Below the pieces are notes generated by a model. That model was not told the origin of the DNA. It worked only from the letters and a program-made list of their open reading frames with translations, and did not search any database. A program made the position numbers and the translations under genes. Source: Macrostomum lignano (taxonomy: Eukaryota). Taken from it: DNA of 64,000 nt. Location of the stretch: NCBI GenBank assembly GCA_002269645.1, contig NIVC01000010.1:2170001-2234000 (forward strand), in the 5' to 3' direction. Shown here one piece after another: positions 30,201-64,000 of this stretch; within the stretch, counting starts at the first letter, position 1; each line of letters starts with the position of its first letter.

Positions 30201-33200
30201 CACCTTCTCCCTCAGCAGATTTGCCAGTTCAACCTCAGACTCCGTGGTCTCCGGCCAGTCAGCCTCCTCATCAGTTGGCTCAACGCTGCCCAGAACAATT
30301 TGCTGTCGCCGATTCAACTGCTCGGCAAATCGATCGGCGTAGCGCATCTCCAAATCGTGCAGCTCGCGGTAGAACTCGGACTCAATTTCCAGCGAGCGGA
30401 ACTGCAACTTCTTGAGGGCGCGAACCCGGCGCTTCACCGGCTCCGGCAGCCTGCGGTGCGACATCATTGGTTGGGGGCGATTTTTAATTTTAATTTTAAT
30501 TGAGAGGCGATTTTTATGGGGATAAAAATAAGTTTAATTTTAATTTTAATTTGAGAGGCGATTTTTATGGGGATTAATTTGAGATGCGATTTTTATGGGG
30601 ATTAATTTGAGAGGCGATTTTTATGGGGATTAATTTGAGAGGCGATTTTTATGGGGATTAATTTTAGAGGCGATTTTTATGGGGATTAATTTGAGAGGCG
30701 ATTTTTATGGGGATTAATTTGAGAGGCGATTTTTATGGGGATTAATGTGAGAGGCGATTTTTTTAAGGAATTAATTTGAGGGGCGATTTTTATGGGGATT
30801 AATTTGAGATGCGCTTTTTATGGGGATTAATTTGAGAGGCAATTTTTATGGGGATTAATTTGAGAGGCGATTTTTATGGGGATTAATTTGAGAGGCGATT
30901 TTTATGGGGATTAATTTGAGAGGCGATTTTTATGGGGATTAATTTGAGAGGCGTTTTTATGGGGATTAATGTGAGAGGCGATTTTTTGAGGGATTAATTT
31001 GAGGGGCGATTTTAATGGGGATTAATTTGAGAGGCGATTTTTATGGGGATTAATTTGAGATGCGATTTTTATACGGATTAATTTGAGAGGCGATTTTATG
31101 GGGATTAATTTGAGAGGCGATTTTTATGGGGATTAATTTGAGAGGCGATTTTTATGGGGATTAATTTGAGGGGCGATTTTTATGGGATTAATTTGAAAGG
31201 CAATTTTTTAAAAGTTATAAGTTTGAATTGCAAGAGTGTGAGGTGTTTAAGATGCCAAAACACACAACATGTATAACAAAAATATTTTTATGTTTTTTAA
31301 TAACGAATGAAAATGATACAGATAGCAGTCCAGACTAGATTAATACAATAGCATAGAGCAGTAATTATAATAAAAAATCCAGCCCAAATGATAGATGGAC
31401 GGTTATAAGATATCAAGTAAATCAAAAAAGAAGATATAATAAGGATGCGATAATTTTAGAACAGCTCGAATAATATTCTCCCATGGGGAATGCAGGGCAA
31501 GGCAAGATTAATCCCAAACATCCCAAATATCCGTCTTAGATTTTTTCCCATTTCTTGACTTCCGAAGGCAGAATTTTTAATCCATCAATCATTTTTATTC
31601 TTTTTTTCCTGTGAAAGAATATTTAGTAGGATTATATTTTACACAAAGGGAGAATTTATGTATCTTTGTCGTTGGAGATTAAAAGTACTTAGAGAGTCCT
31701 CAGAGTGTCACGAGATAAAGGACCCACTGAAATACAGAATGATACGACTGAGATAACCGAGGGCCATATATTGGTCCCAGGTCGCTTCATGGAAATAGAA
31801 ATTTCAAAATCTACACAGTATAATTTTACCAGCAGAAATTTTATACCCCAGAACAGGGGCCGGCAAACTTCGGCCCGCGAAGCCCCTCTATCCGGACCAG
31901 CTCGAATCTTTTGAAATTTCACAATAGCAATCCGGCCCGCTTAAGATTTGCGTCTCTTCTCAGCTCTCTTCTCTCCTCACTCCCTTCTCTCTTCTCTCCT
32001 CACTCTCTTCTCTCATCACTCCCTTCTCTCTTCTCTCCTGACTCCCTTCTCTCTTCTCTCATCACTCCCTTCTCTCTTCTCTCCTCACTCCCTTCTCTCT
32101 TCTCTCATCACTCCCTTCTCTCTTCTCTCCTCACTCCCTTCTCTCCTCACTCCCTTCTCTCTTCTCTCCTGACTCCCTTCTCTCTTCTCTCATCACTCCC
32201 TTCTCTCTTCTCTCCTCACTCCCTTCTCTCTTCTCTCATCACTCCCTTCTCTCTTCTCTCCTCACTCCCTTCTCTCTTTTCTCCTCACTCCCTTCTCTCC
32301 TCACTCCCTTCTTTCTTCTCTCCTGACTCCCTTCTCTCTTCTCTCATCACTCCCTTCTCTCTTCTCTCATCACTCCCTTCTCTCTTCTCTCCTCACTCCC
32401 TTCTCTCTTCTCTCCTCACTCTCCTCTCTTCTCTCCTCACTCCCTTCTCTCATCACTCCCTTCTCTCATCACTCCCTTCTCTCTTCTCTCATCACTCCCT
32501 TCTCTCTTCTCTCCTCACTCTCCTCTCTTCTCTCCTCACTCCCTTCTCTCATCACTCCCTTCTCTCATCACTCCCTTCTCTCTTCTCTCATCACTCCCTT
32601 CTCTCTTCTCTCATCACTCCCTTCTCTCTTCTCTCATCACTCCCTTCTCTCTTCTCTCCTCACTCTCTTCTCTCCTCACTCCCTTCTGTCTTCTCTCATC
32701 ACTGCCTTCTCTCCTCACTCACTTCTCTCATCACTCCCTTCTTTCCTTACTTCCTGCTCTCTTCTGTTATCACTCCCTTCTCTTTTCTCTTCTCTCCCTA
32801 CTCCTCTCTTCTCTTATCTCTCCTCTCTCATCCAGCCATGAGCTGGATGCTTTGTTTGTTTCTCAAGTTAAAAACAATTGCCAAAACTTCTTGCGCAACC
32901 AAAGAGGCGCATAAATTCGCGCAATCTATGGCAAATACCCAAAACATGCACTTCCTCACAAAGAACCTTGACATATTTGTGCCTCTTACCTTTGATAACT
33001 GCCAAAGGCATCCAGACGTTTCTCTGCCACCGTGGACTCGTCCGTGTCAGACATTTTAACCGATCAAAATTTGCTTATTACAGCTTTACAGCTCGACTTG
33101 GGGTCGTTGAATTTCTATGCAATATAAGCACACACTTGCAAGAATATGCATGCGAAGGCACTCATATATATATAGCAACTCCACTCTCTCCAACTTGAGA

Positions 33201-41950: not shown

Positions 41951-43509
41951 TCAAACCTCGTACATATACACATGTAAATGCAAATTTTTAGAGCATATCG
42001 AGAAGTACATGTATTCCATTTTCCAATTAAAAGGTACTTTTATATTGATCGTAAAAAGCGATAGTTGCTCTGATCGAGTTGTTTATTCTAGTAGACAAAT
42101 AGATTACCTAGCTGGGGCTTACTTACCAGATAGTGTTCTCACACTCGTCTACACCTGATCAGACAAATTATCCTTTTTTCCTTCCATAATTCTCCAACCC
42201 CATGCACATCACTTTCCATAGTGCTTCTCAACAATCCCCTTCGCTTTAGCACTTTGCATTACTTCCGGTCTATCTTCGCGTTCTAACAATTGCAAGTACC
42301 GCATCGTCGTCTCGATCTGTCCTCTACGAGCAATCTTGAAAACCCCACTTTACCTCAAGCTACGGTCGAAGTATCTAATTTTTTCCTGAAAGCTACAGTA
42401 CATGAACATGTATGTCAGATGAAGATAGAGGTAATGGAGCAGTAGGGAGTTCAAATTTCACACCGAAATATAGCAGATGTTCTACAGAGATTCAACATGC
42501 ATGTACACACTGCTGTAAATCATTTATGCACATTTGCACGAACGTATGTCGAATGTAAGATGTCATAACTACTATTGATAGTAAGGTAATGATTTACTCC
42601 ACCTCAACATTGAAGGCATAGATTGATGTACTTTATGAATTTGCTGAGCAAAACTATTACATTTCAATGTATTATCCATCGACCTAATTGCAATAATATC
42701 AAAATCAATGGCTTATATTCCCTTTGACAGCTAGGGTAGTGAATTTGAACGCAGTGGTCCGTCACAAAAGCATTAAACTAGTAAGTGCAGAGCGAAGTTA
42801 CATTATTGACCAAATTGCGAATAAGATACGCGCAGGCAATATGTTAATGAGTACGAGAGGTGTACGAGCGTATATGCCACTGGAGTAAAGGAATACAGAA
42901 CAGCTATTTTGTCACGACTGTGGTATCCTTGAGAGCCGCAGACGTAAAGACAGGCACATACAGACACACACACACACACACACAATCACGCACCGGGCAC
43001 TTGTTGGTACGGTATACAATGGTGGGCACTTATTTTGCAATTTTTTTTGACACACGAAAACACACACATACACACAGTGCAATGACCTATTAAGTATTTT
43101 TAGCATTTAAATGATGAAAAAAAGCATACATTGAAATAAAAAAGCACGTCCCATACTAATAGTATGATCTATTGAAAGTGAAGGAATAGCATATCATCGT
43201 GTAACAATATTGTCCTCAGTCCAGCGAATTCAGCATTACTTGAAATACAAAAGGCTTCGTTAAAGCCAATCCGCATAAAGGAAAAACTAGTTATAAGCAG
43301 TCAATTTACCTTTACCTTTACTAATACGCTATAATGCTGTACGCAATATGCCTGACTAATATGAATAAAAAATTCAATTACACTTGCGCTTAGGAAAAAA
43401 CCTAAAATTGACAGTGAAACTGAAAAACTGAAACGCAGAGATTAGTTAAGCAGATTAAACAACAAATTCCGGTCCAGTGAGAAAACAGGAGTCTCGTTAT
43501 TTAGAGCAC

Positions 43510-46500
43510 TCTGGCATCCAGCATTACGCTCGTAGACTATTAGCTGCTCTTCTGAGTTCGAAGCTGACAGGTCCGTTGCAGTCGGCATCGGTTGAGTCGA
43601 CTGCCAATTTAGTCAATGGGTTTCGTTTCTTCTTTTCACTGAAACCTGTGGTGGGATTAGCAAAAGATCGATTTCGCATATCTATTTAGTGATTTCAAGG
43701 ACGACAAAATCATTCTTCTCTGCATGTCAGATCCAGAAGATGCTAGTTTGCTTGCAGCTTTCTGTAGGAGCATTCTACTTTAGTAAAGTGTACCCATTCT
43801 AAAATAAGCTGTTTTTTATATGTCCCAACAAGTCTCTGTGCAGTGTGTCATCCGTTTGCCCATCAATTTGTTCTGGAGCCCTTTATTAATTGAGTTCTTT
43901 AGGTGACTTAACAAATGCGGAAAAAACTAGACACACACACAGTGGCCCAACACTTCGTGTCCCAATAAATGCTAGGAAAAATGCACTGCAGTGTTTAAGC
44001 ATCTCTTCTGAGGGGCCCTTGCATGCATAGCTATAGAAGCTGCTAAGACCCGATCTGAGAGTTAAAAGTACAAAAAGTTATAACGCTTCTAGACACGAAA
44101 ACGAATGCAGCCACAGCATGAACTAACCTTTCATTGAAGCTTCTGCTTAAGACTTTGATGCTGTGAAGCATTCTGGCATCTAGCATTACTCTCGTAGACT
44201 ATTAGCTGCTCTCCTGAGTTCGAAGCTGACAGGTCCGTTGCAGCGGCATCGGTTGAGTCGACTGCCAATTTAGTCAATGGGTTTCGTTTCTTCTTTTCAC
44301 TGGAACCTGTGGTGGGATTAGCAAAAGATCGATTTCGCATATCTATTTAGTGATTTCAAGGACGACAAAATCATTCTTCTCTGCATGTCTGCTCCAGAAG
44401 ATGCTAGTTTGCTTGCAGCTTTCTGTAGGAGCATTCTACTTTAGTAAAGTGTACCCATTGTAAAATAAGCTGTTTTTTATATGTCCCAACAAGTCTCTGT
44501 GCAGTGTGTCATCTGTTTGCCCAACAATTTGTTCTGGAGCCCTTTATTAATTGAGTTCTTTAGGTGACTTAACAAATGCGGAAAAAACTAGACACACACA
44601 CAGTGGCCCAACACTTCGTGTCCCAATAAATGCTAGGAAAAATGCACTGCAGTGTTTAAAGCATCTCTTCTGAGGGGCCCTTGCATGCATAGCTATAGAA
44701 GCTGCTAAGACCCGATCTGAGAGTTAAAAGTACAAAAAGTTATAACGCTTCTAGACACGAAAACGAATGCAGCCACAGCATGAACTAACCTTTCATTGAA
44801 GCTTCTGCTTAAGACTTTGATGCTGTGAAGCATTCTGGCATCTAGCATTACTCTCGTAGACTATTAGCTGCTCTCCTGAGTTCGAAGCTGACAGGTCCGT
44901 TGCAGCGGCATCGGTTGAGTCGACTGCCAATTTAGTCAATGGGTTTCGTTTCTTCTTTTCACTGGAACCTGTGGTGGGATTAGCAAAAGATCGATTTCGC
45001 ATATCTATTTAGTGATTTCAAGGACGACAAAATCATTCTTCTCTGCATGTCTGCTCCAGAAGATGCTAGTTTGCTTGCAGCTTTCTGTAGGAGCATTCTA
45101 CTTTAGTAAAGTGTACCCATTGTAAAATAAGCTGTTTCTAATATGTCCCAACAAGTCTCTGTGCAGTGTGTCATCTGTTTGCCCAACAATTTGTTCTGGA
45201 GCCCTTTATTAATTGAGTTCTTTAGGTGACTTAACAAATGCGGAAAAAACTAGACACACACACAGTGGCCCAACACTTCGTGTCCCAATAAATGCTAGGA
45301 AAAATGCACGGCAGTGTTTAAAGCATCTCTTCTGAGGGGCCCTTGCATGCATAGCTATAGAAGCTGCTAAGACCCGATCTGAGAGTTAAAAGTACAAAAA
45401 GTTATAACGCTTCTAGACACGAAAACGAATGCAGCCACAGCATGAACTAACCTTTCATTGAAGCTTCTGCTTAAGACTTTGATGCTGTGAAGCATTCTGG
45501 CATCTAGCATTACTCTCGTAGACTATTAGCTGCTCTCCTGAGTTCGAAGCTGACAGGTCCGTTGCAGTCGGCATAGATTGAGTCGACTGCCAATTTAGTC
45601 AATGGGTTTCGTTTCTTCTTTTCACTGGAACCTGTGGTGGGATTAGCAAAAGATCGATTTCGCATATCTGTTTAGTGATTTCAAGGACGACAAAATCATT
45701 CTTCTCTGCATGTCTGCTCCAGAAGATGCTAGTTTGCTTGCAGCTTTCTGTAGGAGCATTCTACTTTAGTAAAGTGTACCCATTCTAAAATAAGCTGTTT
45801 TTATATGTCCCAACAAGTCTCTGTGCAGTGTGTCATCCGTTTGCCCATCAATTTGTTCTGGAGCCCTTTATTAATTGAGTTCTTTAGGTGACTTAACAAA
45901 TGCGGAAAAAACTAGACACACACACAGTGGCCCAACACTTCGTGTCCCAATAAATGCTAGGAAAAATGCACTGCAGTGTTTAAGCATCTCTTCTGAGGGG
46001 CCCTTGCATGCATAGCTATAGAAGCTGCTAAGACCCGATCTGAGAGTTAAAAGTACAAAAAGTTATAACGCTTCTAGACACGAAAACGAATGCAGCCACA
46101 GCATGAACTAACCTTTCATTGAAGCTTCTGCTTAAGACTTTGATGCTGTGAAGCATTCTGGCATCTAGCATTACTCTCGTAGACTATTAGCTGCTCTCCT
46201 GAGTTCGAAGCTGACAGGTCCGTTGCAGTCGGCATAGATTGAGTCGACTGCCAATTTAGTCAATGGGTTTCGTTTCTTCTTTTCACTGGAACCTGTGGTG
46301 GGATTAGCAAAAGATCGATTTCGCATATCTGTTTAGTGATTTCAAGGACGACAAAATCATTCTTCTCTGCATGTCAGATCCAGAAGATGCTAGTTTGCTT
46401 GCAGCTTTCTGTAGGAGCATTCTACTTTAGTAAAGTGTACCCATTCTAAAATAAGCTGTTTTTAATATGTCCCAACAAGTCTCTGTGCAGTGTGTCATCC

Positions 46501-49500
46501 GTTTGCCCATCAATTTGTTCTGGAGCCCTTTATTAATTGAGTTCTTTAGGTGACTTAACAAATGCGGAAAAAACTAGACACACACACAGTGGCCCAACAC
46601 TTCGTGTCCCAATAATTGCTAGGAAAAATGCACTGCAGTGTTTAAGCATCTCCTCTGAGGGGCCCTTGCATGCATAGCTATAGAAGCTGCTAAGACCCGA
46701 TCTGAGAGTTAAAAGTACAAAAAGTTATAACGCTTCTAGACACGAAAACGAATGCAGCCACAGCATGAACTAACCTTTCATTGAAGCTTCTGCTTAAGAC
46801 TTTGATGCTGTGAAGCATTCTGGCATCTAGCATTACTCTCGTAGACTATTAGCTGCTCTCCTGAGTTCGAAGCTGACAGGTCCGTTGCAGTCGGCATCGA
46901 TTGAGTCGACTGCCAATTTAGTCAATGGGTTTCGTTTCTTCTTTTCACTGGAACCTGTGGTGGGATTAGCAAAAGATCGATTTCGCATATCTATTTAGTG
47001 ATTTCAAGGACGACAAAATCATTCTTCTCTGCATGTCAGCTCCAGAAGATGCTAGTTTGCTTGCAGCTTTCTGTAGGAGCATTCTACTTTAGTAAAGTGT
47101 ACCCATTCTAAAATAAGCTGTTTTTATATGTCCCAACAAGTCTCTGTGCAGTGTGTCATCCGTTTGCCCATCAATTTGTTCTGGAGCCCTTTATTAATTG
47201 AGTTCTTTAGGTGACTTAACAAATGCGGAAAAAACTAGACACACACACAGTGGCCCAACACTTCGTGTCCCAATAATTGCTAGGAAAAATGCACTGCAGT
47301 GTTTAAGCATCTCTTCTGAGGGGCCCTTGCATGCATAGCTATAGAAGCTGCTAAGACCCGATCTGAGAGTTAAAAGTACAAAAAGTTATAACGCTTCTAG
47401 ACACGAAAACGAATGCAGCCACAGCATGAACTAACCTTTCATTGAAGCTTCTGCTTAAGACTTTGATGCTGTGAAGCATTCTGGCATCTAGCATTACTCT
47501 CGTAGACTATTAGCTGCTCTCCTGAGTTCGAAGCTGACAGGTCCGTTGCAGTCGGCATCGATTGAGTCGACTGCCAATTTAGTCAATGGGTTTCGTTTCT
47601 TCTTTTCACTGGAACCTGTGGTGGGATTAGCAAAAGATCGATTTCGCATATCTATTTAGTGATTTCAAGGACGACAAAATCATTCTTCTCTGCATGTCAG
47701 CTCCAGAAGATGCTAGTTTGCTTGCAGCTTTCTGTAGGAGCATTCTACTTTAGTAAAGTGTACCCATTCTAAAATAAGCTGTTTTTATATGTCCCAACAA
47801 GTCTCTGTGCAGTGTGTCATCCGTTTGCCCATCAATTTGTTCTGGAGCCCTTTATTAATTGAGTTCTTTAGGTGACTTAACAAATGCGGAAAAAACTAGA
47901 CACACACACAGTGGCCCAACACTTCGTGTCCCAATAATTGCTAGGAAAAATGCACTGCAGTGTTTAAGCATCTCTTCTGAGGGGCCCTTGCATGCATAGC
48001 TATAGAAGCTGCTAAGACCCGATCTGAGAGTTAAAAGTACAAAAAGTTATAACGCTTCTAGACACGAAAACGAATGCAGCCACAGCATGAACTAACCTTT
48101 CATTGAAGCTTCTGCTTAAGACTTTGATGCTGTGAAGCATTCTGGCATCTAGCATTACTCTCGTAGACTATTAGCTGCTCTCCTGAGTTCGAAGCTGACA
48201 GGTCCGTTGCAGTCGGCATCGATTGAGTCGACTGCCAATTTAGTCAATGGGTTTCGTTTCTTCTTTTCACTGGAACCTGTGGTGGGATTAGCAAAAGATC
48301 GATTTCGCATATCTATTTAGTGATTTCAAGGACGACAAAATCATTCTTCTCTGCATGTCAGCTCCAGAAGATGCTAGTTTGCTTGCAGCTTTCTGTAGGA
48401 GCATTCTACTTTAGTAAAGTGTACCCATTCTAAAATAAGCTGTTTTTATATGTCCCAACAAGTCTCTGTGCAGTGTGTCATCCGTTTGCCCATCAATTTG
48501 TTCTGGAGCCCTTTATTAATTGAGTTCTTTAGGTGACTTAACAAATGCGGAAAAAACTAGACACACACACAGTGGCCCAACACTTCGTGTCCCAATAATT
48601 GCTAGGAAAAATGCACTGCAGTGTTTAAGCATCTCTCTGAGGGGCCCTTGCATGCATAGCTATAGAAGCTGCTAAGACCCGATCTGAGAGTTAAAAGTAC
48701 AAAAAGTTATAACGCTTCTAGACACGAAAACGAATGCAGCCACAGCATGAACTAACCTTTCATTGAAGCTTCTGCTTAAGACTTTGATGCTGTGAAGCAT
48801 TCTGGCATCTAGCATTACTCTCGTAGACTATTAGCTGCTCTCCTGAGTTCGAAGCTGACAGGTCCGTTGCAGTCGGCATCGATTGAGTCGACTGCCAATT
48901 TAGTCAATGGGTTTCGTTTCTTCTTTTCACTGGAACCTGTGGTGGGATTAGCAAAAGATCGATTTCGCATATCTGTTTAGTGATTTCAAGGACGACAAAA
49001 TCATTCTTCTCTGCATGTCAGCTCCAGAAGATGCTAGTTTGCTTGCAGCTTTCTGTAGGAGCATTCTACTTTAGTAAAGTGTACCCATTCTAAAATAAGC
49101 TGTTTTTAATATGTCCCAACAAGTCTCTGTGCAGTGTGTCATCCGTTTGCCCATCAATTTGTTCTGGAGCCCTTTATTAATTGAGTTCTTTAGGTGACTT
49201 AACAAATGCGGAAAAAACTAGACACACACACAGTGGCCCAACACTTCGTGTCCCAATAATTGCTAGGAAAAATGCACTGCAGTGTTTAAGCATCTCCTCT
49301 GAGGGGCCCTTGCATGCATAGCTATAGAAGCTGCTAAGACCCGATCTGAGAGTTAAAAGTACAAAAAGTTATAACGCTTCTAGACACGAAAACGAATGCA
49401 GCCACAGCATGAACTAACCTTTCATTGAAGCTTCTGCTTAAGACTTTGATGCTGTGAAGCATTCTGGCATCTAGCATTACTCTCGTAGACTATTAGCTGC

Positions 49501-52500
49501 TCTCCTGAGTTCGAAGCTGACAGGTCCGTTGCAGTCGGCATCGATTGAGTCGACTGCCAATTTAGTCAATGGGTTTCGTTTCTTCTTTTCACTGGAACCT
49601 GTGGTGGGATTAGCAAAAGATCGATTTCGCATATCTATTTAGTGATTTCAAGGACGACAAAATCATTCTTCTCTGCATGTCAGCTCCAGAAGATGCTAGT
49701 TTGCTTGCAGCTTTCTGTAGGAGCATTCTACTTTAGTAAAGTGTACCCATTCTAAAATAAGCTGTTTTTATATGTCCCAACAAGTCTCTGTGCAGTGTGT
49801 CATCCGTTTGCCCATCAATTTGTTCTGGAGCCCTTTATTAATTGAGTTCTTTAGGTGACTTAACAAATGCGGAAAAAACTAGACACACACACAGTGGCCC
49901 AACACTTCGTGTCCCAATAATTGCTAGGAAAAATGCACTGCAGTGTTTAAGCATCTCCTCTGAGGGGCCCTTGCATGCATAGCTATAGAAGCTGCTAAGA
50001 CCCGATCTGAGAGTTAAAAGTACAAAAAGTTATAACGCTTCTAGACACGAAAACGAATGCAGCCACAGCATGAACTAACCTTTCATTGAAGCTTCTGCTT
50101 AAGACTTTGATGCTGTGAAGCATTCTGGCATCTAGCATTACTCTCGTAGACTATTAGCTGCTCTCCTGAGTTCGAAGCTGACAGGTCCGTTGCAGTCGGC
50201 ATCGATTGAGTCGACTGCCAATTTAGTCAATGGGTTTCGTTTCTTCTTTTCACTGGAACCTGTGGTGGGATTAGCAAAAGATCGATTTCGCATATCTATT
50301 TAGTGATTTCAAGGACGACAAAATCATTCTTCTCTGCATGTCAGCTCCAGAAGATGCTAGTTTGCTTGCAGCTTTCTGTAGGAGCATTCTACTTTAGTAA
50401 AGTGTACCCATTCTAAAATAAGCTGTTTTTATATGTCCCAACAAGTCTCTGTGCAGTGTGTCATCCGTTTGCCCATCAATTTGTTCTGGAGCCCTTTATT
50501 AATTGAGTTCTTTAGGTGACTTAACAAATGCGGAAAAAACTAGACACACACACAGTGGCCCAACACTTCGTGTCCCAATAATTGCTAGGAAAAATGCACT
50601 GCAGTGTTTAAGCATCTCTCTGAGGGGCCCTTGCATGCATAGCTATAGAAGCTGCTAAGACCCGATCTGAGAGTTAAAAGTACAAAAAGTTATAACGCTT
50701 CTAGACACGAAAACGAATGCAGCCACAGCATGAACTAACCTTTCATTGAAGCTTCTGCTTAAGACTTTGATGCTGTGAAGCATTCTGGCATCTAGCATTA
50801 CTCTCGTAGACTATTAGCTGCTCTCCTGAGTTCGAAGCTGACAGGTCCGTTGCAGTCGGCATCGATTGAGTCGACTGCCAATTTAGTCAATGGGTTTCGT
50901 TTCTTCTTTTCACTGGAACCTGTGGTGGGATTAGCAAAAGATCGATTTCGCATATCTGTTTAGTGATTTCAAGGACGACAAAATCATTCTTCTCTGCATG
51001 TCAGCTCCAGAAGATGCTAGTTTGCTTGCAGCTTTCTGTAGGAGCATTCTACTTTAGTAAAGTGTACCCATTCTAAAATAAGCTGTTTTTAATATGTCCC
51101 AACAAGTCTCTGTGCAGTGTGTCATCCGTTTGCCCATCAATTTGTTCTGGAGCCCTTTATTAATTGAGTTCTTTAGGTGACTTAACAAATGCGGAAAAAA
51201 CTAGACACACACACAGTGGCCCAACACTTCGTGTCCCAATAATTGCTAGGAAAAATGCACTGCAGTGTTTAAGCATCTCCTCTGAGGGGCCCTTGCATGC
51301 ATAGCTATAGAAGCTGCTAAGACCCGATCTGAGAGTTAAAAGTACAAAAAGTTATAACGCTTCTAGACACGAAAACGAATGCAGCCACAGCATGAACTAA
51401 CCTTTCATTGAAGCTTCTGCTTAAGACTTTGATGCTGTGAAGCATTCTGGCATCTAGCATTACTCTCGTAGACTATTAGCTGCTCTCTGAGTTCGAAGCT
51501 GACAGGTCCGTTGCAGTCGGCATCGATTGAGTCGACTGCCAATTTAGTCAATGGGTTTCGTTTCTTCTTTTCACTGGAACCTGTGGTGGGATTAGCAAAA
51601 GATCGATTTCGCATATCTATTTAGTGATTTCAAGGACGACAAAATCATTCTTCTCTGCATGTCTGCTCCAGAAGATGCTAGTTTGCTTGCAGCTTTCTGT
51701 AGGAGCATTCTACTTTAGTAAAGTGTACCCATTCTAAAATAAGCTGTTTTTATATGTCCCAACAAGTCTCTGTGCAGTGTGTCATCCGTTTGCCCATCAA
51801 TTTGTTCTGGAGCCCTTTATTAATTGAGTTCTTTAGGTGACTTAACAAATGCGGAAAAAACTAGACACACACACAGTGGCCCAACACTTCGTGTCCCAAT
51901 AATTGCTAGGAAAAATGCACTGCAGTGTTTAAGCATCTCTTCTGAGGGGCCCTTGCATGCATAGCTATAGAAGCTGCTAAGACCCGATCTGAGAGTTAAA
52001 AGTACAAAAAGTTATAACGCTTCTAGACACGAAAACGAATGCAGCCACAGCATGAACTAACCTTTCATTGAAGCTTCTGCTTAAGACTTTGATGCTGTGA
52101 AGCATTCTGGCATCTAGCATTACTCTCGTAGACTATTAGCTGCTCTCCTGAGTTCGAAGCTGACAGGTCCGTTGCAGTCGGCATAGATTGAGTCGACTGC
52201 CAATTTAGTCAATGGGTTTCGTTTCTTCTTTTCACTGGAACCTGTGGTGGGATTAGCAAAAGATCGATTTCGCATATCTATTTAGTGATTTCAAGGACGA
52301 CAAAATCATTCTTCTCTGCATGTCTGCTCCAGAAGATGCTAGTTTGCTTGCAGCTTTCTGTAGGAGCATTCTACTTTAGTAAAGTGTACCCATTGTAAAA
52401 TAAGCTGATTTTTATATGTCCCAACAAGTCTCTGTGCAGTGTGTCATCCGTTTGCCCATCAATTTGTTCTGGAGCCCTTTATTAATTGAGTTCTTTAGGT

Positions 52501-54655
52501 GACTTAACAAATGCGGAAAAAACTAGACACACACACAGTGGCCCAACACTTCGTGTCCAATAAATGCTAGGAAAAATGCACGCAGTGTTTAAAGCATCTC
52601 TTCTGAGGGGCCCTTGCATGCATAGCTATAGAAGCTGCTAAGACCCGATCTGAGAGTTAAAAGTACAAAAAGTTATAACGCTTCTAGACACGAAAACGAA
52701 TGCAGCCACAGCATGAACTAACCTTTCATTGAAGCTTCTGCTTAAGACTTTGATGCTGTGAAGCATTCTGGCATCTAGCATTACTCTCGTAGACTATTAG
52801 CTGCTCTCCTGAGTTCGAAGCTGACAGGTCCGTTGCAGTCGGCATCGGTTGAGTCGACTGCCAATTTAGTCAATGGGTTTCGTTTCTTCTTTTCACTGGA
52901 ACCTGTGGTGGGATTAGCAAAAGATCGATTTCGCATATCTATTTAGTGATTTCAAGGACGACAAAATCATTCTTCTCTGCATGTCTGCTCCAGAAGATGC
53001 TAGTTTGCTTGCAGCTTTCTGTAGGAGCATTCTACTTTAGTAAAGTGTACCCATTCTAAAATAAGCTGTTTTTAATATGTCCCAACAAGTCTCTGTGCAG
53101 TGTGTCATCCGTTTGCCCATCAATTTGTTCTGGAGCCCTTTATTAATTGAGTTCTTTAGGTGACTTAACAAATGCGGAAAAAACTAGACACACACACAGT
53201 GGCCCAACACTTCGTGTCCCAATAAATGCTAGGAAAAATGCACTGCAGTGTTTAAAGCATCTCTTCTGAGGGGCCCTTGCATGCATAGCTATAGAAGCTG
53301 CTAAGACCCGATCTGAGAGTTAAAAGTACAAAAAGTTATAACGCTTCTAGACACGAAAACGAATGCAGCCACAGCATGAACTAACCTTTCATTGAAGCTT
53401 CTGCTTAAGACTTTGATGCTGTGAAGCATTCTGGCATCTAGCATTACTCTCGTAGACTATTAGCTGCTCTCCTGAGTTCGAAGCTGACAGGTCCGTTGCA
53501 GTCGGCATCGGTTGAGTCGACTGCCAATTTAGTCAATGGGTTTCGTTTCTTCTTTTCACTGAAACCTGTGGTGGGATTAGCAAAAGATCGATTTCGCATA
53601 TCTATTTAGTGATTTCAAGGACGACAAAATCATTCTTCTCTGCATGTCTGCTCCAGAAGATGCTAGTTTGCTTGCAGCTTTCTGTAGGAGCATTCTACTT
53701 TAGTAAAGTGTACCCATTCTAAAATAAGCTGTTTTTTATATGTCCCAACAAGTCTCTGTGCAGTGTGTCATCCGTTTGCCCATCAATTTGTTCTGGAGCC
53801 CTTTATTAATTGAGTTCTTTAGGTGACTTAACAAATGCGGAAAAAACTAGACACACACACAGTGGCCCAACACTTCGTGTCCCAATAAATGCTAGGAAAA
53901 ATGCACGGCAGTGTTTAAAGCATCTCTTCTGAGGGGCCCTTGCATGCATAGCTATAGAAGCTGCTAAGACCCGATCTGAGAGTTAAAAGTACAAAAAGTT
54001 ATAACGCTTCTAGACACGAAAACGAATGCAGCCACAGCATGAACTAACCTTTCATTGAAGCTTCTGCTTAAGACTTTGATGCTGTGAAGCATTCTGGCAT
54101 CTAGCATTACTCTCGTAGACTATTAGCTGCTCTTCTGAGTTCGAAGCTGACAGGTCCGTTGCAGTCGGCATCGGTTGAGTCGACTGCCAATTTAGTCAAT
54201 GGGTTTCGTTTCTTCTTTTCACTGGAACCTGTGGTGGGATTAGCAAAAGATCGATTTCGCATATCTGTTTAGTGATTTCAAGGACGACAAAATCATTCTT
54301 CTCTGCATGTCAGATCCAGAAGATGCTAGTTTGCTTGCAGCTTTTTGTAGGAGCATTCTACTTTAGTAAAGTGTACCCATTCTAAAATAAGCTGTTTTTT
54401 ATATGTCCCAACAAGTCTCTGTGCAGTGTGTCATCCGTTTGCCCAACAATTTGTTCTGGAGCCCTTTATTAATTGAGTTCTTTAGGTGACTTAACAAATG
54501 CGGAAAAAACTAGACACACACACAGTGGCCCAACACTTCGTGTCCCAATAAATGCTAGGAAAAATGCACTGCAGTGTTTAAAGCATGTCTTCTGAGGGGC
54601 CCTTGCATGCATAGCTATAGAAGCTGCTAAGACCCGATCTGAGAGTTAAAAATAC
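43510..54655. repeat. 661-662-bp satellite, about 17 head-to-tail copies
   Basis: The marker GACCCGATCTGAGAG recurs 17 times at about 661-bp spacing (about 44048 to about 54632). Copies differ by only a few substitutions or indels. Confidence 0.97.
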
Positions 54656-55847
54656 AAAACTTATAATTTTTGTGGTTGGACACGTAGGCTATTGAATGTC
54701 AATGGATTCAGACGAAATATCAAGTTTTACTCAAAGCTTTTACAGCCTACCGGTTAAAGTCGACGGATCCTTTGGCAATTGCGCCACATGACAGTTGAGC
54801 AAAGATGATATCCCTGAAGTAGAGATAGAAATAAGCAGGAGCAGTATTTTTTATAGCATTTAAATATAAATGCTTCTTGTTTCCGACAATTTCTTTTAAT
54901 ACCACTTACATTTTTATCGCTGTGCCATTCCATGCTGTTCCTTTCCATACCATGGTGACTCGGGTGCCATGGCAGAGGCAGAGTTGACCATTGATTTCAG
55001 CATAGCGAGTACATGCCAATTTTGTTTACCGTACGTTTGCGGGGTGGCGTCAATAATAGACTAAAATAAATGTACACTTAACTAGCAAGGGGACTCTGGT
55101 AAATTGGAGCCATGTACACAGGGGGGTAGGGCTTAGTCCTAACATGTACGGGGTAAGTCCTAATAGGAGTGGGCAATTGTAAACGACACTGTAGCACACA
55201 GTCCCAACAATTTATAGAATATCGAATGCGCGCAGCAGTCAATAGCAAGTCCTAACAAGAGTAGGCTGTTGTATTCAACACTGCAACACTGTCCGAACAA
55301 TTTGGTTCGTGTAGAGTACTGATGCCCATCACAGTCAAGTACATGTAAGCCCTTGTCATTTCTTTAGGTTTATCTCCATCCAGAACCATCCTTTGACAAT
55401 AAAATACCCTTAAAAGTATTTTGCTATGTTTTGCTATGTATGTATTTTAATGTATGCTATGTATATAAGTCTTGAAACAAAGACTGCAGCAAATGAATGC
55501 GCTTGAAATCTACTATTAGTAAAAATATGAGAAAAAACCAATAAAAATATACGGGAGCAGATTAGCCATTTCAGTGTCCCAATAGTGATTTGGTCGAATT
55601 TTATATCATTTTTCATTATTGGGACGCCAGTTTTTGCTTAATTATGGACTCAGAAAGTAAAATTATTAAAAATGAGTTGCACCATCAAAAAGAGGCTGTC
55701 GAGCTGAATCCAAAGAGTATTTTTTTGAGCTGCTATTGTAAGTTTTTTGGAAGTGTTGGACGGACTTGATGGGACAGTCCCAACATTTTTTTTGGCCCAA
55801 CAGCGCGGGTCCCGTTGTATGCGTATGGCCCAACAAATGCCCCGTGC

Positions 55848-56478
<631 letters not shown>

Positions 56479-57059
56479 GAAATTAAAAAGGATGAATGAC
56501 ATAAATAGACAAATTCAAAAACTGAGAACGAGCCTTGTTGAGCTGTTCGCAAATAATGCTGTCCATAAGTAGGTATACGTGAGAAGCTCCCAGCCTTAAG
56601 CTAGGACAAGCTAGATCTGGCCTAACCTACTGATTCGTAGAAAACTTTCATTGACAGCTTGGCGGGCGAATTGTATATACGACTGCTTATTGATCAGTGT
56701 TAATTTTAGTTTGCTGCTGTAGGCAATTTGCTTTACACCCCATCAGTTTAGACGACAACAAATCAGTAATTATTTACATAGTAATGCTGAACTATACATG
56801 CGGCATGTACATAAATGTAATTTGTATTCGTTCGACGCGCTACAAGAATAATTGAAATTCGGCGCGTGAAACTCGTGAAGAAAAATCGATAAAAAAGAGA
56901 TCTACAAATGACCTTATTTTCCGAAATGAGTAGACGAATGTAAATTTAAATATTTTGCAACGTTGCTCCATAATGAAAGGGCAGTTTCATTGGGCATTTT
57001 TGAAGTGCCATAGTCGTCATGTAAGTGTCTTTGCTGGAGTGCCTTTGCTTATGGAGTGC

Positions 57060-57600
57060 CATCATGGAGTGCCTATGCTCATGGGAGTGTCTTTGCTCAT
57101 GGGAGTGTCTTTGCTCATGGGAGTGTCTTTGCTCATGGGAGTGTCTTTGCTCATGGGAGTGTCTTTGCTCATGGGAGTGTCTTTGCTCAAGGGAGTGCCT
57201 TTGTTCATGGGAGTGCCTATGCTCATGGGAGTGTCTTTGCTCATGGGAGTGCCTATGCTCATGGGAGTGTCTTTGCTCATGGGAGTGTCTTTGCTCATGG
57301 GAGTTCCTTTACTCATGGGAGTGTCTTTGCTCATGGGAGTGCCTATGCTCATGGGAGTGTCTTTGCTCATGGGAGTGCCTATGCTCATGGGAGTGTCTTT
57401 GCTCATGGGAGTGCCTATGCTCATGGGAGTGTCTTTGCTCATGGGAGTGTCTTTGCTCATGGGAGTGTCTTTGCTCATGGGAGTGTCTTTGCTCATGGGA
57501 GTGTCTTTGCTCATGGGAGTGTCTTTGCTCATGGGAGTGTCTTTGCTCATGGGAGTGTCTTTGCTCATGGGAGTGTCTTTGCTCATGGGAGTGTCTTTGC
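57060..57600. repeat. 18-nt minisatellite
   Basis: Unit GGGAGTGTCTTTGCTCAT, about 30 copies. It is the source of the ORFs at 56955-57680. Confidence 0.95.
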
Positions 57601-57874
57601 CATTGTTAGTAGGGAGTAAGCTAGAATTAAAAAAATCAATGAAAGCATTTAGCGCAGTATATAATTTTTTTGCGTTTTAGCTTGCTCACTTTGGATGCTT
57701 CAATATATATTGTATTTCACTTAGCTTAAGTTCCTCATGTGTCCAGTTAAACATATTCAGTAATGTATTTATTAGTAAAACATTAATAATTCCTTTTTTA
57801 ACTTTGATGACAGGTCAGCTATATCCGGCAGTAACGCAGTGGATGCTTCAAAATATTTTTCCTGGCTCTCCGCA

Positions 57875-60766
57875 TCACTCCTGACCAAGGCGTCGCAACT
57901 TCTCTTCGTATAATTCCTGCAGCCGTCGTTGCAGCCGCTCGCGCTTCGATTCAGCTGACAAGATGGCATCAGCGGCGGCGCGTTTGATCTCCATGAGACC
58001 GCCGCCAGCCATGTAGCGGACTGGCCAGCCGCGCCTGCTGACAGCTGACCTTCTGTAAGCGGGAAAATAGCTCGAAAATTCAATAGTCGCGAAGAGAGCT
58101 CGAAAATTTGAACACTAGGAGAAAAAGAGAGAGAGAGAGAAAGAGTCTATGAAAGAGGTTGCCACTGGTATCCTTCTTTGTGCTGATGTCTGTGTGGCCG
58201 AACTGTCAGCTTGGTTGTCTTTTTACGTCGCCCTTTGATTTCCCATTTACACCCCTTGAAGCATGGGTATAATTACTGTGATTGTGCCATAGACATAGAC
58301 TGAGAGAAAGAACAAAAGACCGGGGGAAAGTCGGGGGGTGCTGGGGGTGTGGGGGCTCACGTTTCAACCATAGACACTTTCATTTGATTAAAACAAAACA
58401 GCAGCCACTGCTATAGAACAGCTCTCGGCCATAGACAATTAGGCCAGTCAAGCTGACACAGACTGCAAGGCTCTGCTCTCTGCTTTAAAGACAATCTAGT
58501 AGAGTATTTCAAACCCATTTATCTTGGCTACAGACCTTCATTTCTACCCTTTATGCTGATTTTGAATTGTATTATTTACTTGATTGACTTTATTGGCTAT
58601 GATCTAAATGAATGCCTATAATGTGGGTTTACTATATGTTAAATATCTCTTTAAGAAGTTGCAACACGCAGGTGAATGCCACTCAGAGAAAATGCTTCTA
58701 AATCTTGTGTGAAATTGATTAGCAATTTAAAAAAAACAGACGTTGTATCTCACAGAAGGCCCTAAGCATCGACCGTGTTTCCATTTCAAGTGACAGCACG
58801 ACAATGGATTTATAGCTATAACCCTACACAACAGCCATTATCTAAATCTTTTTTTCAAATCCAGAGCTTTTATAGCTTTTAAAAGGGACACCAATGTGAG
58901 ACAAGTCAGTTGGTCTTGGAGGCAAGAGACAAACTATCCAGCCAACCAATGCATTTCAATTTCAATAGAGAGAAATCTCTCACAGTCCAACAGCTGGGAG
59001 CTCCAATCAATCACCTAGAAGCTGAAGCGCTAGATCCTGTCAGCTGGAGCAGCTTACTCATTAATAAATAATCCTTTGTCTCTACTGAGTTGCTTGGCTT
59101 GTTGCTTCTGCTGGTCTGTTCTCTCTCTCTATATCGGTTTTTTCCTCTCGACATCACTGTCGTATCGACAGCTGCTGCGTTGGAATCCGGGTGGGCAGTA
59201 AGCCGCTTAAACTCTGCGCAGGCCACTATGGGCTATAATAGTCTGAAGCTGTTCATGCAAAGCTTCAATGGCTACTGCCTCTCAATACTGTCACGCCATC
59301 TACACAGCACGTAAAGCCAGTTTACTCAAAAAAAGTTAAACGACTCAAAAAGAAAACTTTTCAATGTGTTTTTTTGTTATTCGATTGGGGCGGCGGTTTT
59401 ATTGTGGCGAGTGTTCCGCTATTCGCTGTAGGGAAAGCGATTTCCGCAGAATGGGAAAAAAATAAATTTCATGCTGTTTTATGAAGCTGATGCGAGATGA
59501 ATTTCTGTATGTGGAGTGGCATTGTTCTCCTGGCGCCCTGATGCAGAAAGCCATTAATACCTGAGCAGGTCTATAGATGCTTCGTGGGTGGGGCCCCAAG
59601 AATGAAAATAAATGGATTCCCTGATACTTTGCTGGTAACTGCTTCAAGCGATGCAGAAATAGAGAAAAATAAACAGGTATACGGGTAGATAATTAGCGAT
59701 TGAAGGTTCGATTCCTGCGCGGCCACATTCCTTTTTGTGCGAGAGCAAAAAACTCAAACCCCCCGAGACGGTGAGAGAAAGTCTGGGCGGCTGTACATCC
59801 TGTGTAAGCGTGTACCTGCGCGTTCTTGTCTGTGTGCGCAAGCGTGCTCAGGGGTTAGCGGAATGAGCCTGACTGTTAGCTTACCCAAATGCTGCAAACT
59901 TACTAAACACTAAGTCAGGCACTAAGTCAGGCACTAAGTCAGGCACTAAGTCAGGCACTAAGTCAGACACTAAGTCAGACACTAAGTCAGGCACTAAGTC
60001 AGGCACTAAGTCAGGCACTAAGTCAGGCACTAAGTCAGGCACTAAGTCAGGCACTAAGTCAGGCACTAAGTCAGGCACTAAGACAGGCACTAAGACAGGC
60101 ACTAAGACAGACACTTAAGACGGACACGAAGTCACTAAGTCAGACACTAAGTCAGACACTAAGTCAGACACTAAGTCAGTCAGGCACTAAGACAGACACT
60201 AAGTCAGGCACTAAGACAGACACTAAGTCAGGTACTAAGACAGACACTAAGACAGACACTAAGTCAGGCACTAAGACAGACACTAAGTCAGACACTAAGT
60301 CAGACACTAAGTCAGACACTAAGTCAGACACTAAGTCAGACACTAAGTCAGACACTAAGTCAGGCACTAAGTCAGGTACTAAGTCAGGCACTAAGTCAGA
60401 TACCACTACAGCCACAAGACTCTATAGTGTCGAGACCATGATAAAATATCATGGTTAGACTGTCACAACCGCAGTGACTCTGGTAAACCCAATAGACTGT
60501 CATTCATCAAGGTAAGGTTTAACTGATTGATAGATACCAGTAAACAGAAGAGTCAACAAAACAGACCTTCCGTCGGCCTCCTCATGCCCAGATCGTTTGT
60601 CCAGTTCCTCCTGCGATGCAGGCAATGCAGTGACCAGGTCCATCACAGCCAGCACAATAACTGAAATGAAGTTTACCAACTATCATAGGTTCGATTCCTT
60701 TTTTAAATCTATTTTTCGCTACTCACCCAAAGAGCAGAAAACTGGCAGTAGAGCGTACTTCGACAT
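57875..60766 (-). CDS. Secreted neuropeptide/peptide hormone precursor, 103 aa, 3 coding exons (ELH/DH44/CRF-like helical peptide, tentative)
   Basis: Exons 60766-60727 (donor GTGAGT), 60660-60567 (acceptor TTCATTTCAG, donor GTCTGT) and 58052-57875 (acceptor TTTTCCCGCTTACAG); phases 1 and 2 fit. Product: MSKYALLPVFCSLVIVLAVMDLVTA-LPASQEELDKR-SGHEEADGRR-SAVSRR-GWPVRYMAGGGLMEIKRAAADAILSAESKRERLQRRLQELYEEKLRRLGQE. It has a signal peptide and several dibasic sites. Confidence 0.8.
59905..60405. repeat. 12-nt minisatellite in the neuropeptide gene intron
   Basis: Unit GCACTAAGTCAG / ACACTAAGTCAG. Confidence 0.95.
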
Positions 60767-61124
60767 TTTATGCTCGCAAATTTGATGATATTCTTTTAAA
60801 TATTTTTTGATATCTGAATTTGGAAATATCCCGGCAGAGAAGCTACGCGCCAAAGTTGAAGAAGACAAATTTATTAATATTGTTCAAGCAATGAGAAACT
60901 GCCGGTCAAACAGGATGTTGGTGTGCCAATCCAGTCAGCTGCTGATTGGTTCAGGAGGGAGAGCGGCGCTTCTGACGTGTCCTTGTCCAATGTGCTGATG
61001 GTGAAGCACTCGTCCTGGTCCCTATAGTTATCCAAGTCATGTAACACTCTTCTGTAGAATGCTTGCTGAGCTGCATCAAAGCCTACCTAACATGTAACAT
61101 TCCAATATACATCGGGACATACTT

Positions 61125-61745
61125 ATCTAACAGGTGACACCCATATCTAACAGATAACACACTTATCTAACAAGTTTTACCCATATCTAGCAGGTCACGA
61201 CTTTATCTAACAAGTGACACCCTTATCTAACAGGTAACAAATTTATTTAACAGATAACACCCTTATCTAACAGGTGGCGCCCTTATATTTTTTTGTTATA
61301 CCCATATCTAACAGGTGAAGACTTTATCTAACAGATGATGCCTTTAACTAACAGATGACCTTCTCCATCTAACAGGTGACACCCTTATCTAGCAGATAAC
61401 ATCTTTATCTAACAGGTGACAGCAATATAAAACAGGTGGCAGCAATATCTAACAGGTGACGCCCTTATCTAACAAGCTCTACCCATATCTATCAGGTAAC
61501 AACTTTATCAAACAGGTAAAGACTTTGTCTAACAAATTAGGAGGACAAATGGGACACCCTTATCTAACAATTGATAACCTTATCTAACAGGTTATATTCA
61601 CATCTAAAAGGTAACAACATTATCTAGCAGGTGATGACTTTACCTAAAAGATGACCTTCTCATCTAACAGGTAACGCTCATATCTAACAGTTATTCTCAT
61701 ATCTAACAGGTTATACCTATACTGTACAGGTGGCGCTCTTATCTA
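61125..61745. repeat. Degenerate about 20-21-nt tandem repeat
   Basis: Recurrent CCTTATCTAACAGGTGAC-like units. Confidence 0.8.
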
Positions 61746-62289
61746 ACTATCTTTGCTTATGATGAAAGTATCTATTCTCGGTAGAATTATATAATAAAGC
61801 TTTTAGAAAGTAATGCTCAGCACATTTTCATTTATGAGCTGCATTGAGAACTGTTGCGCGATCGTAAAGTTAATCCTTAGCTGCTAATTAAACGAAGGAA
61901 ATTAAATGCTGATTACAAAAGCCCTTAGTTCCCATAAATGCACCGTAATCTTGAGGGACAATCGTATGCGTCTTACGAGAGTGCAAGCAAGACAAAGTTT
62001 CATGATGACGAACTTTAAGATCCTGATTAGAAATATGAGTATCTATTTTGTAATTATATTAAGAAATCAAAGCCATAAACTTTTCACAAAACTTATTTAT
62101 CCATGCGTACGCAATGGGGGACAGGGGCGGACCCCTCCCCATAAGGTCTTCACAAAAGTAAGTTGCACTCCTCAAAAAAACTAAATGAAAAGGGCAAAAA
62201 ACATTTATAAATGACAGAAAAGCTTAACTTTTGTCACCCCTTGGACTCGGCATCTACCGACCTACGAGGCTGGAAAATTAGCGCCCACC

Positions 62290-62728
62290 AAAAGACAGGG
62301 GCGTCCATAAAGAGACAGGGGTGCCCATAAAGAGACAGGGTACCCATAAAGAGACAGGGGCGCCCATAAAGAGACAGGGTACCCATAAAGAGACAGGGGC
62401 GCTCACCAAGAGACAGAAGCGCCCATAAAAAGACAGGGGTACCCATAAAGAGACAGAGTACCCATAAAGAGACAGGGTACCCATAAAGAGACAGGTACCC
62501 ATAAAGAGACAGGGTACCCATAAAGAGACAGGGTACCCATAAAGAGACAGGGTACCCATAAAGAGACAGGGTACCCATAAAGAGACAGGGGTACCCATAA
62601 AGAGACAGGGGTACCCATAAAGAGACAGGGTACCCATAAAGAGACAGGGTACCCATAAAGAGACAGGGTACCCATAAAGAGACAGGGGTACGCATAAAGA
62701 GACAGGGGTACGCATAAAGAGACAGGGT
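62290..62728. repeat. 17-18-nt minisatellite abutting the retrotransposon
   Basis: Unit GTACCCATAAAGAGACAGG(G). Confidence 0.95.
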
Positions 62729-62730
62729 AG

Positions 62731-64000
<1,270 letters not shown>

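Follow-up and report, generated by a model that had tools for sequence, protein, structure and literature searches.

A family of predicted prepropeptides in Macrostomum lignano sharing a conserved 15-residue core

The window analysed here is a stretch of 64,000 nucleotides of Macrostomum lignano DNA (contig NIVC01000010.1 of assembly GCA_002269645.1, positions 2,170,001 to 2,234,000), and positions are counted from its first letter. On its minus strand lies the three-exon gene Mlig025753, whose 103-amino-acid product, MSKYALLPVFCSLVIVLAVMDLVTALPASQEELDKRSGHEEADGRRSAVSRRGWPVRYMAGGGLMEIKRAAADAILSAESKRERLQRRLQELYEEKLRRLGQE, contains a 15-residue segment, GWPVRYMAGGGLMEI, bracketed by two dibasic sites. 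We favour the reading, with a probability of about 0.6, that this gene belongs to a lineage-restricted family of M. lignano prepropeptides from which the 15-mer is released as a non-amidated signalling peptide. Its support comes from the conservation pattern, the invariant basic pairs that flank the core, the small size of the precursors and their lack of domains. A first-pass annotation of the window had placed the emphasis elsewhere, on a charged C-terminal helix likened to the hormones of the CRF/DH44/ELH type, and had added as a side remark that GWPVRYMAGGGLMEI might be a separate peptide. The side remark has become the main point: the 15-mer is the sole segment conserved across the family.

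A conserved core in a family of eight loci

An exhaustive phmmer scan covering 1.84 billion representative proteins returned, below E = 0.001, just two other proteins, P0006 (E 1e-6) and P0007 (E 4e-4), both hypothetical proteins of M. lignano. A profile search of a 5.8-billion-protein collection, started from a five-sequence alignment of the family, found only M. lignano proteins and a spurious bacterial EF-Ts (E = 0.22). Relatives may exist in other flatworms, since a motif of 15 residues is too short to be picked up across phyla by E-values computed over whole databases. The family comprises three paralog groups, namely Mlig025753, Mlig029116 (three loci) and Mlig028524 (two to three loci), each present as two or three near-identical homeologous copies. 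Reconstruction of all eight loci gave the same architecture throughout: three coding exons separated by GT-AG introns of phases 1 and then 2, the first intron interrupting the hydrophobic stretch of the putative signal peptide and the second lying 1-7 codons ahead of the basic pair on the N-terminal side of the core. This common exon structure implies common descent and fixes the reading frame of exon 3. The precursors measure 81-103 amino acids and contain no Pfam domains; at E<=10, no Pfam family matched the Mlig025753 precursor, its isolated tail, the core plus its flanks or the two paralogs.

The element that the paralog groups share is the 15-mer between basic pairs, not the helix. With its flanks, the core reads RR-GWPVRYMAGGGLMEI-KR in Mlig025753; the remaining two groups have KR-AWPVRYMSGGGLMEI-KR and KR-GWPVRYVTGGGVMEI-KR. 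The pattern [KR]R-[GA]WPVRY[MV]xGGG[LV]MEI-KR is carried by all eight loci. Invariant across the groups are R52, W54-P-V-R-Y58, G61-G-G63 and M65-E-I-K-R69. Between groups, 11-13 of the 15 core residues are identical (73-87%), as against 3-4 of 16-20 in the spacer and 5-11 of 24-29 (21-38%) in the tail; spacer and tail together give 15-38%. Over the 19-codon block formed by the core and its two dibasic sites (window 58036-57980; compared in the loci L001, L004 and L007), the groups differ from one another by 3-4 synonymous changes.

The two homeologs of the window copy, L002 (NIVC01002400.1) and L003 (NIVC01001022.1), are near-identical and use the same splice sites. Exon 3 holds all six codons at which they depart from the window copy; the differences at codons 46 and 96 are synonymous. 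The remaining four are the replacements A72D, I75T, K81E and L92F; all fall in the C-terminal 34 residues (P = 0.012 if replacements were uniform), one of them abolishing the K81-R82 site, and none falls in the core.

A further open reading frame (ORF) near one of the paralogs was considered as well. It is unannotated, ends in KRSSASSCASQPVFTDRNSWPLQGVAGGGAFVGK and a stop (1034-1129 in L007 and 487-582 in L008, both on the minus strand) and lies on the strand opposite to Mlig028524, some 5 kb upstream of that gene. The ORF is faintly core-like (W-P-[VL]...GGG), would end in an amidation signal, and has a tblastn E of 0.045 in a small search space. As a candidate fourth family member, ending in NSWPLQGVAGGGAFVGK and a stop, it was rejected: nothing like the family's signal-peptide exon turned up in the sequence upstream, and the resemblance is probably due to chance. 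The sequence is identical in both homeologs, and conservation is therefore uninformative for this candidate.

Gene model and transcript

The gene had been described as hidden. It is in fact already public as an unnamed hypothetical protein, and is thus not new to the databases: in a protein search the 103-amino-acid product is 100% identical, over its full length, to PAA94507.1 (hypothetical protein BOX15_Mlig025753g1, partial), and the UniRef entry A0A1I8HT75, in the cluster of PAA94507.1, is the same 103 residues. The annotated range of Mlig025753g1 corresponds to window positions 60868-57875, and the GenBank protein, labelled "partial", reads through the leader 60767..60868 in frame. No further gene is annotated within 10 kb on either side of the locus. 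The M. lignano annotation rests on a transcriptome assembled from RNA-seq with the genome as guide (StringTie/TACO and the TBONE boundary pipeline), not on ab initio prediction (PMC5730564), so that the spliced transcript is independently supported.

The other structural claims of the first-pass annotation stand. The three exons of the minus strand are joined at 60727>60660 and 60567>58052, both with canonical sites, into a spliced coding sequence of 312 nt that encodes the protein as it had been quoted. It is also correct that a mechanical ORF track misframes exon 3: the longest stop-to-stop ORF over this exon (57772-58083, minus strand) lies in a different frame, and the true frame offers an ORF of only 45 amino acids. 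The AATAAA downstream of the stop (Table 1) is also found in both homeologous loci.

The locus sits between minisatellites in a very repeat-rich window, which would suit an ORF arisen by chance or a pseudogene that is still transcribed. We give next to no credence to such an origin: the annotation is based on RNA-seq, and eight intact loci in three diverged groups keep the frame, the splice sites, the intron phases and the core.

Table 1. Coordinates of the Mlig025753 gene, its predicted products and the minisatellites of the window
Feature	Window position	Strand	Remarks
Coding exons	60766-60727 / 60660-60567 / 58052-57875	minus	ATG at 60766, stop ends at 57875
5' transcribed leader, minimum upstream extent	60767..60868	minus	start of PAA94507.1, LSSSTLARS..., equals window 60868 downward
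Exon 1, coding part, 40 nt	60727..60766	minus	Met1 to base 1 of codon 14; first half of putative signal peptide; donor TTGG|GTGAGT
Intron 1, 66 nt, phase 1	60661..60726	minus	in hydrophobic core of putative signal peptide; GTGAGT...TTTCAG
Exon 2, 94 nt	60567..60660	minus	remainder of putative signal peptide (to Ala25, 60626) and acidic spacer LPASQEELD-KR-SGHEEADG-R; ends GGAAG|GTCTGT
Intron 2, 2514 nt, phase 2	58053..60566	minus	holds 12-mer minisatellite at 59908-60399; GTCTGT...TTACAG
Exon 3, coding part, 178 nt including stop	57875..58052	minus	RR sites, core, KR, C-terminal helix; TGA at 57877-57875
Arg51-Arg52, dibasic site preceding core	58031..58036	minus	KR in both other paralog groups (alignment)
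Core peptide GWPVRYMAGGGLMEI, residues 53-67	57986..58030	minus	predicted bioactive product; 11-13/15 identical among three paralog groups
Lys68-Arg69, dibasic site following core	57980..57985	minus	invariant in all family members (alignment)
C-terminal associated peptide AAADAILSAESKRERLQRRLQELYEEKLRRLGQE, residues 70-103	57878..57979	minus	predicted amphipathic helix (AlphaFold, hydrophobic moment); segment earlier taken as ELH-like
AATAAA, starts 102 nt past stop	57768..57773	minus	putative poly(A) signal; sole canonical signal in 375 nt after stop
Minisatellites	10329-12218, 21489-22259, 22929-23559, 24443-25808, 26945-28774, 30546-31208		
Minisatellites	31964-32814, 55952-56384, 57062-57600, 59908-60399, 61121-61715, 62305-62729		

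Predicted processing and nature of the product

By heuristic measures the N-terminus looks like a signal peptide: it carries Lys3, a 17-residue hydrophobic core with a Kyte-Doolittle maximum of 3.2 over 11 residues (at residues 9-19), and the residues V-T-A (-3 to -1) just ahead of the likely cut. Equivalents exist in each paralog group, and the hydrophobic core scores 3.2 in all three. Seven dibasic sites are found in the 103 residues. The first-pass annotation had likewise noted a signal peptide, an acidic spacer and KR/RR sites. Its broader description of a small spliced secreted precursor with prohormone-convertase sites is supported, and the gene model is backed by the RNA-seq-based annotation and by paralogs of like exon structure.

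We propose the following sequence of events. The 25-residue signal peptide would direct the precursor to the secretory pathway and be removed after Ala25 (V-T-A). Cleavage of the prohormone-convertase type would then occur at Arg51-Arg52 and Lys68-Arg69, and a carboxypeptidase would trim the basic residues to leave GWPVRYMAGGGLMEI as a linear free-acid peptide of 15 residues (computed monoisotopic mass 1635.79 Da), which contains neither Cys nor an amidation signal. The 15-mer may act as an intercellular signal, most likely as a neuropeptide or peptide hormone on a receptor, while the acidic spacer and the C-terminal helix would be precursor-associated pieces. In other granule cargo, amphipathic helices serve folding or regulated-granule sorting; by analogy, it is tempting to speculate that the tail may do the same here. 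We read this tail as a precursor-associated amphipathic helix under weak constraint.

Several points weigh against a released 15-residue signal. (i), the core codons are rather alike at synonymous sites too, so that part of the identity of the cores could come from gene conversion, codon bias or nucleotide-level constraint instead of selection acting on the peptide. (ii), the family is seen in one species, and its conservation is judged from paralogs instead of orthologs. (iii), the signal-peptide and cleavage steps are predicted by heuristics applied to the sequence. (iv), the peptide would end without the amide that is found on many, though not all, neuropeptides. (v), the searched supplements of published studies contain no expression, peptidomic or receptor record. 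(vi), in the AlphaFold model, computed with the five-sequence alignment as input, a helix at residues 3-25, over the putative signal peptide, is followed by disorder over 29-62 (predicted local distance difference test, pLDDT, <50) and by a second helix over 63-102 (pLDDT 74-89), which spans Lys68-Arg69 and leaves room for an uncleaved long form.

Such a long form, with Lys68-Arg69 left intact, would be a peptide of about 51 residues (Gly53-Glu103) consisting of a conserved, flexible N-terminal "message" and a variable helical C-terminal "address", as in class B receptor ligands but without homology to them. The model accommodates it, with a continuous helix running over the KR pair and residues 53-62 disordered, and the tails of Mlig025753 and Mlig029116 have RE..L.RRL.EL in common (11/29 identical). 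However, the KR after the core is invariant and the residues that follow it are variable; Mlig028524 has an unrelated tail that lacks amphipathicity (moment 0.30); and the Mlig025753 tail gathers the homeolog replacements and contains further dibasic sites. We therefore hold the long form to be quite improbable. More improbable again is its extension to a two-domain ligand of a secretin-class (class B) G-protein-coupled receptor (GPCR), perhaps an unrecognisable descendant of the CRF/DH44/ELH family, in which receptor activation would fall to the flexible conserved N-terminus and docking to the variable helix; such an arrangement, to which we also attach very little likelihood, would partly rescue the earlier idea.

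The same precursor, processed in the same way, might instead supply a gland secretion (prostate/seminal-fluid, adhesive, pharyngeal or defensive) and not a neuronal product. The family is found only in Macrostomum, no evidence of neuronal expression was found, and small lineage-restricted secreted proteins are reported as frequent among the reproduction-related and gland transcripts of this genus (PMC7336406, PMC10092323). Against a gland product, a short conserved peptide between invariant dibasic sites, amid drifting flanks, is the pattern classically shown by signalling peptides that convertases process, the net charge of the tail is +1, unlike that of a cationic antimicrobial peptide, and the four gene IDs are absent from the searched supplements of reproduction-related and other expression studies, files that may be truncated or use different identifiers. 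A gland secretion is unlikely, but it is the strongest rival of the signalling peptide that we prefer.

The C-terminal helix and the CRF/DH44/ELH label

The C-terminal segment is charged and amphipathic, as the first-pass annotation had stated. Its 34 residues form most of the modelled 63-102 helix and reach a maximum hydrophobic moment of 0.66, a value matched by 3.4% of shuffles; the corresponding figures are 0.60 in Mlig029116 (6.4% of shuffles) and 0.30 in Mlig028524 (P = 0.58), whose tail is not amphipathic. The remark that the terminal Gly is followed by QE and a stop is likewise correct: the protein ends ...R98-R99-L-G101-Q-E-stop, with no basic partner after Gly101 and hence no amidation signal, and the homeologs are alike in this respect. 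The tail also contains the dibasic pairs K81R82, R87R88 and R98R99.

The family label attached to this helix did not survive profile, PDB and shuffle tests, all of which went against it. No CRF or ELH match was found in Pfam at E<=10, and a PDB sequence search at the same threshold gave four weak unrelated matches, with no chain of the CRF or urocortin family among them. The pattern D-xx-L-xx-E-xx-RER-x-QR-x-L-x-[ED]-L, put forward as common to the tail and to mollusc egg-laying hormone (ELH), does fit the flatworm tail; it does not fit the ELH fragment that had been quoted, for which two gaps are needed. The best local alignment to ELH scores 33, a score reached by 5.0% of composition-preserving shuffles (3.6-8% by query segment), and this fraction is qualified by the post hoc choice of ELH as the comparator. 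The homeolog tail scores 25 (P = 0.33), and the tails of the other two paralog groups are at chance. Human CRF and Drosophila DH44 score below 86-96% of shuffles.

A divergent CRF/DH44/ELH hormone located in the charged helix (about residues 67-101) and acting on a secretin-class GPCR is therefore highly improbable. What speaks for it is the position of a helical and amphipathic segment at the close of a secreted precursor, together with the alignment to the quoted ELH fragment; the database searches, the gapped pattern and the low CRF and DH44 scores speak against it. In such a reading the hormone segment should be the conserved one, and yet the tail is 21-38% identical between groups vs 73-87% for the 15-mer. 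The tail, the fastest-changing part of the protein, also holds three internal dibasic sites, of which K81R82 is lost in a homeolog, and receives all four homeolog replacements. The mature peptides of these families measure about 36-46 residues, and some members tolerate basic pairs. Finally, the Gly101-Gln-Glu-stop ending is at odds with a family whose peptides are predicted to be amidated (PMC6425005). The resemblance to ELH and CRF is compositional: the helix is rich in Arg, Glu, Leu and Gln.

Genomic surroundings

Minisatellites are unusually dense in the window (Table 1), with periods of 4-28 bp, in addition to two arrays with periods of 39 bp and 60-81 bp. The one in intron 2 consists of about 41 copies of the 12-mer CACTAAGTCAGG, and an 18-mer minisatellite of 30 copies lies just 3' of the gene, where it gives rise to long spurious ORFs. 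From 43345 to 54465 the window is made of about 17 head-to-tail units of a 661-bp satellite, mostly 97-100% identical, and this array accounts for the flat composition profile at 44-54 kb. Both introns of Mlig025753 contain GGAATCGAACC, a T-arm-like motif (near 60700 in intron 1 and near 59715 in intron 2, minus strand), which may mark fragments of tRNA-derived short interspersed elements; an ARAGORN scan of 55000-64000 detected no tRNA, and an Rfam scan of the entire window was likewise empty. Farther away, an uninterrupted ORF of 1039 amino acids (17452-20571, minus strand) encodes an ionotropic glutamate receptor that appears intronless throughout (Pfam Lig_chan 1.8e-52, ANF_receptor 3.4e-30 and Lig_chan-Glu_bd 2.6e-29).

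Significance

Little is charted of peptide signalling in M. lignano, a flatworm model for which transgenesis and RNA interference are available. Should the 15-mer prove to be a real signalling peptide, this animal would gain an orphan neuropeptide family, one so far seen only there. The three paralog groups provide natural variants for receptor deorphanisation. The core motifs (WPVRY, Gly-Gly-Gly-[LV]-Met and Met-Glu-Ile-Lys-Arg) are absent from the planarian and schistosome peptide lists that were searched (main text and supplements for planarians, main texts for schistosomes). "WPVRY" occurs in no paper of the searched literature, which did not include the flatworm neuropeptide study of Koziol et al. 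2016, where the family may already have an npp number. The gene IDs are likewise absent from the full-text literature and the Macrostomum study supplements that were searched.

Two cautions of more general use emerge: charged helices rich in Arg, Glu and Leu at the end of a precursor resemble CRF and ELH hormones by composition alone, and automatic database names such as "Promotilin" or "Adipokinetic hormone" are unreliable for proteins of this kind. The finding itself is not tied to any long-standing open question.

Comparison with known peptide systems

In its layout the family recalls preprogalanin with GMAP and promotilin with the motilin-associated peptide: a signal peptide, a short spacer, one short bracketed peptide and a longer charged C-terminal peptide whose sequence is not conserved, in a precursor of about 80-100 amino acids without Cys. 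The likeness does not extend to the peptides. Galanin(1-15) and spexin score 18 and 14 against the core, values reached by 22% and 29% of shuffles, and of the galanin/spexin G/N-W-T motif only Gly-Trp is held in common, one paralog having Ala-Trp. No Pfam motilin/ghrelin match was obtained for the precursor at E<=10. Names given in UniProt and UniRef to near-identical or paralogous members (A0A1I8H4U9, A0A1I8JFX4 and A0A1I8JHN8) disagree with one another, one homeolog being called "Promotilin", a paralog "Adipokinetic hormone", with "Secreted protein" as the third name. Adipokinetic hormone (AKH) is a pyroglutamate peptide placed straight after the signal peptide, an amidated, W-containing octa- to decapeptide. 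Both the motilin and the AKH names were rejected for lack of a Pfam match at E<=10, for the Mlig025753 precursor as for P0006; against AKH, a spacer follows the signal peptide, with no Gln or Gly-Lys-Arg arrangement.

What the Mlig025753 precursor has in common with the CRF/DH44/ELH hormones is a C-terminal helix, charged and amphipathic, some 34 residues long and of Arg/Glu/Leu/Gln-rich composition. It differs from them in lacking both profile similarity and an amidation signal and in the internal dibasic sites of this segment; nor is the helix conserved among paralogs, the conserved element lying outside it. The core itself may be likened to the non-amidated linear invertebrate neuropeptides of the pedal peptide/orcokinin type, which have a Gly-rich centre: about 15 residues, a free acidic C-terminus, a run of Gly and dibasic release. 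Pedal peptide/orcokinin precursors usually contain multiple tandem copies and bear other motifs, whereas the M. lignano family has one copy per precursor, marked by W-P-V-R-Y.

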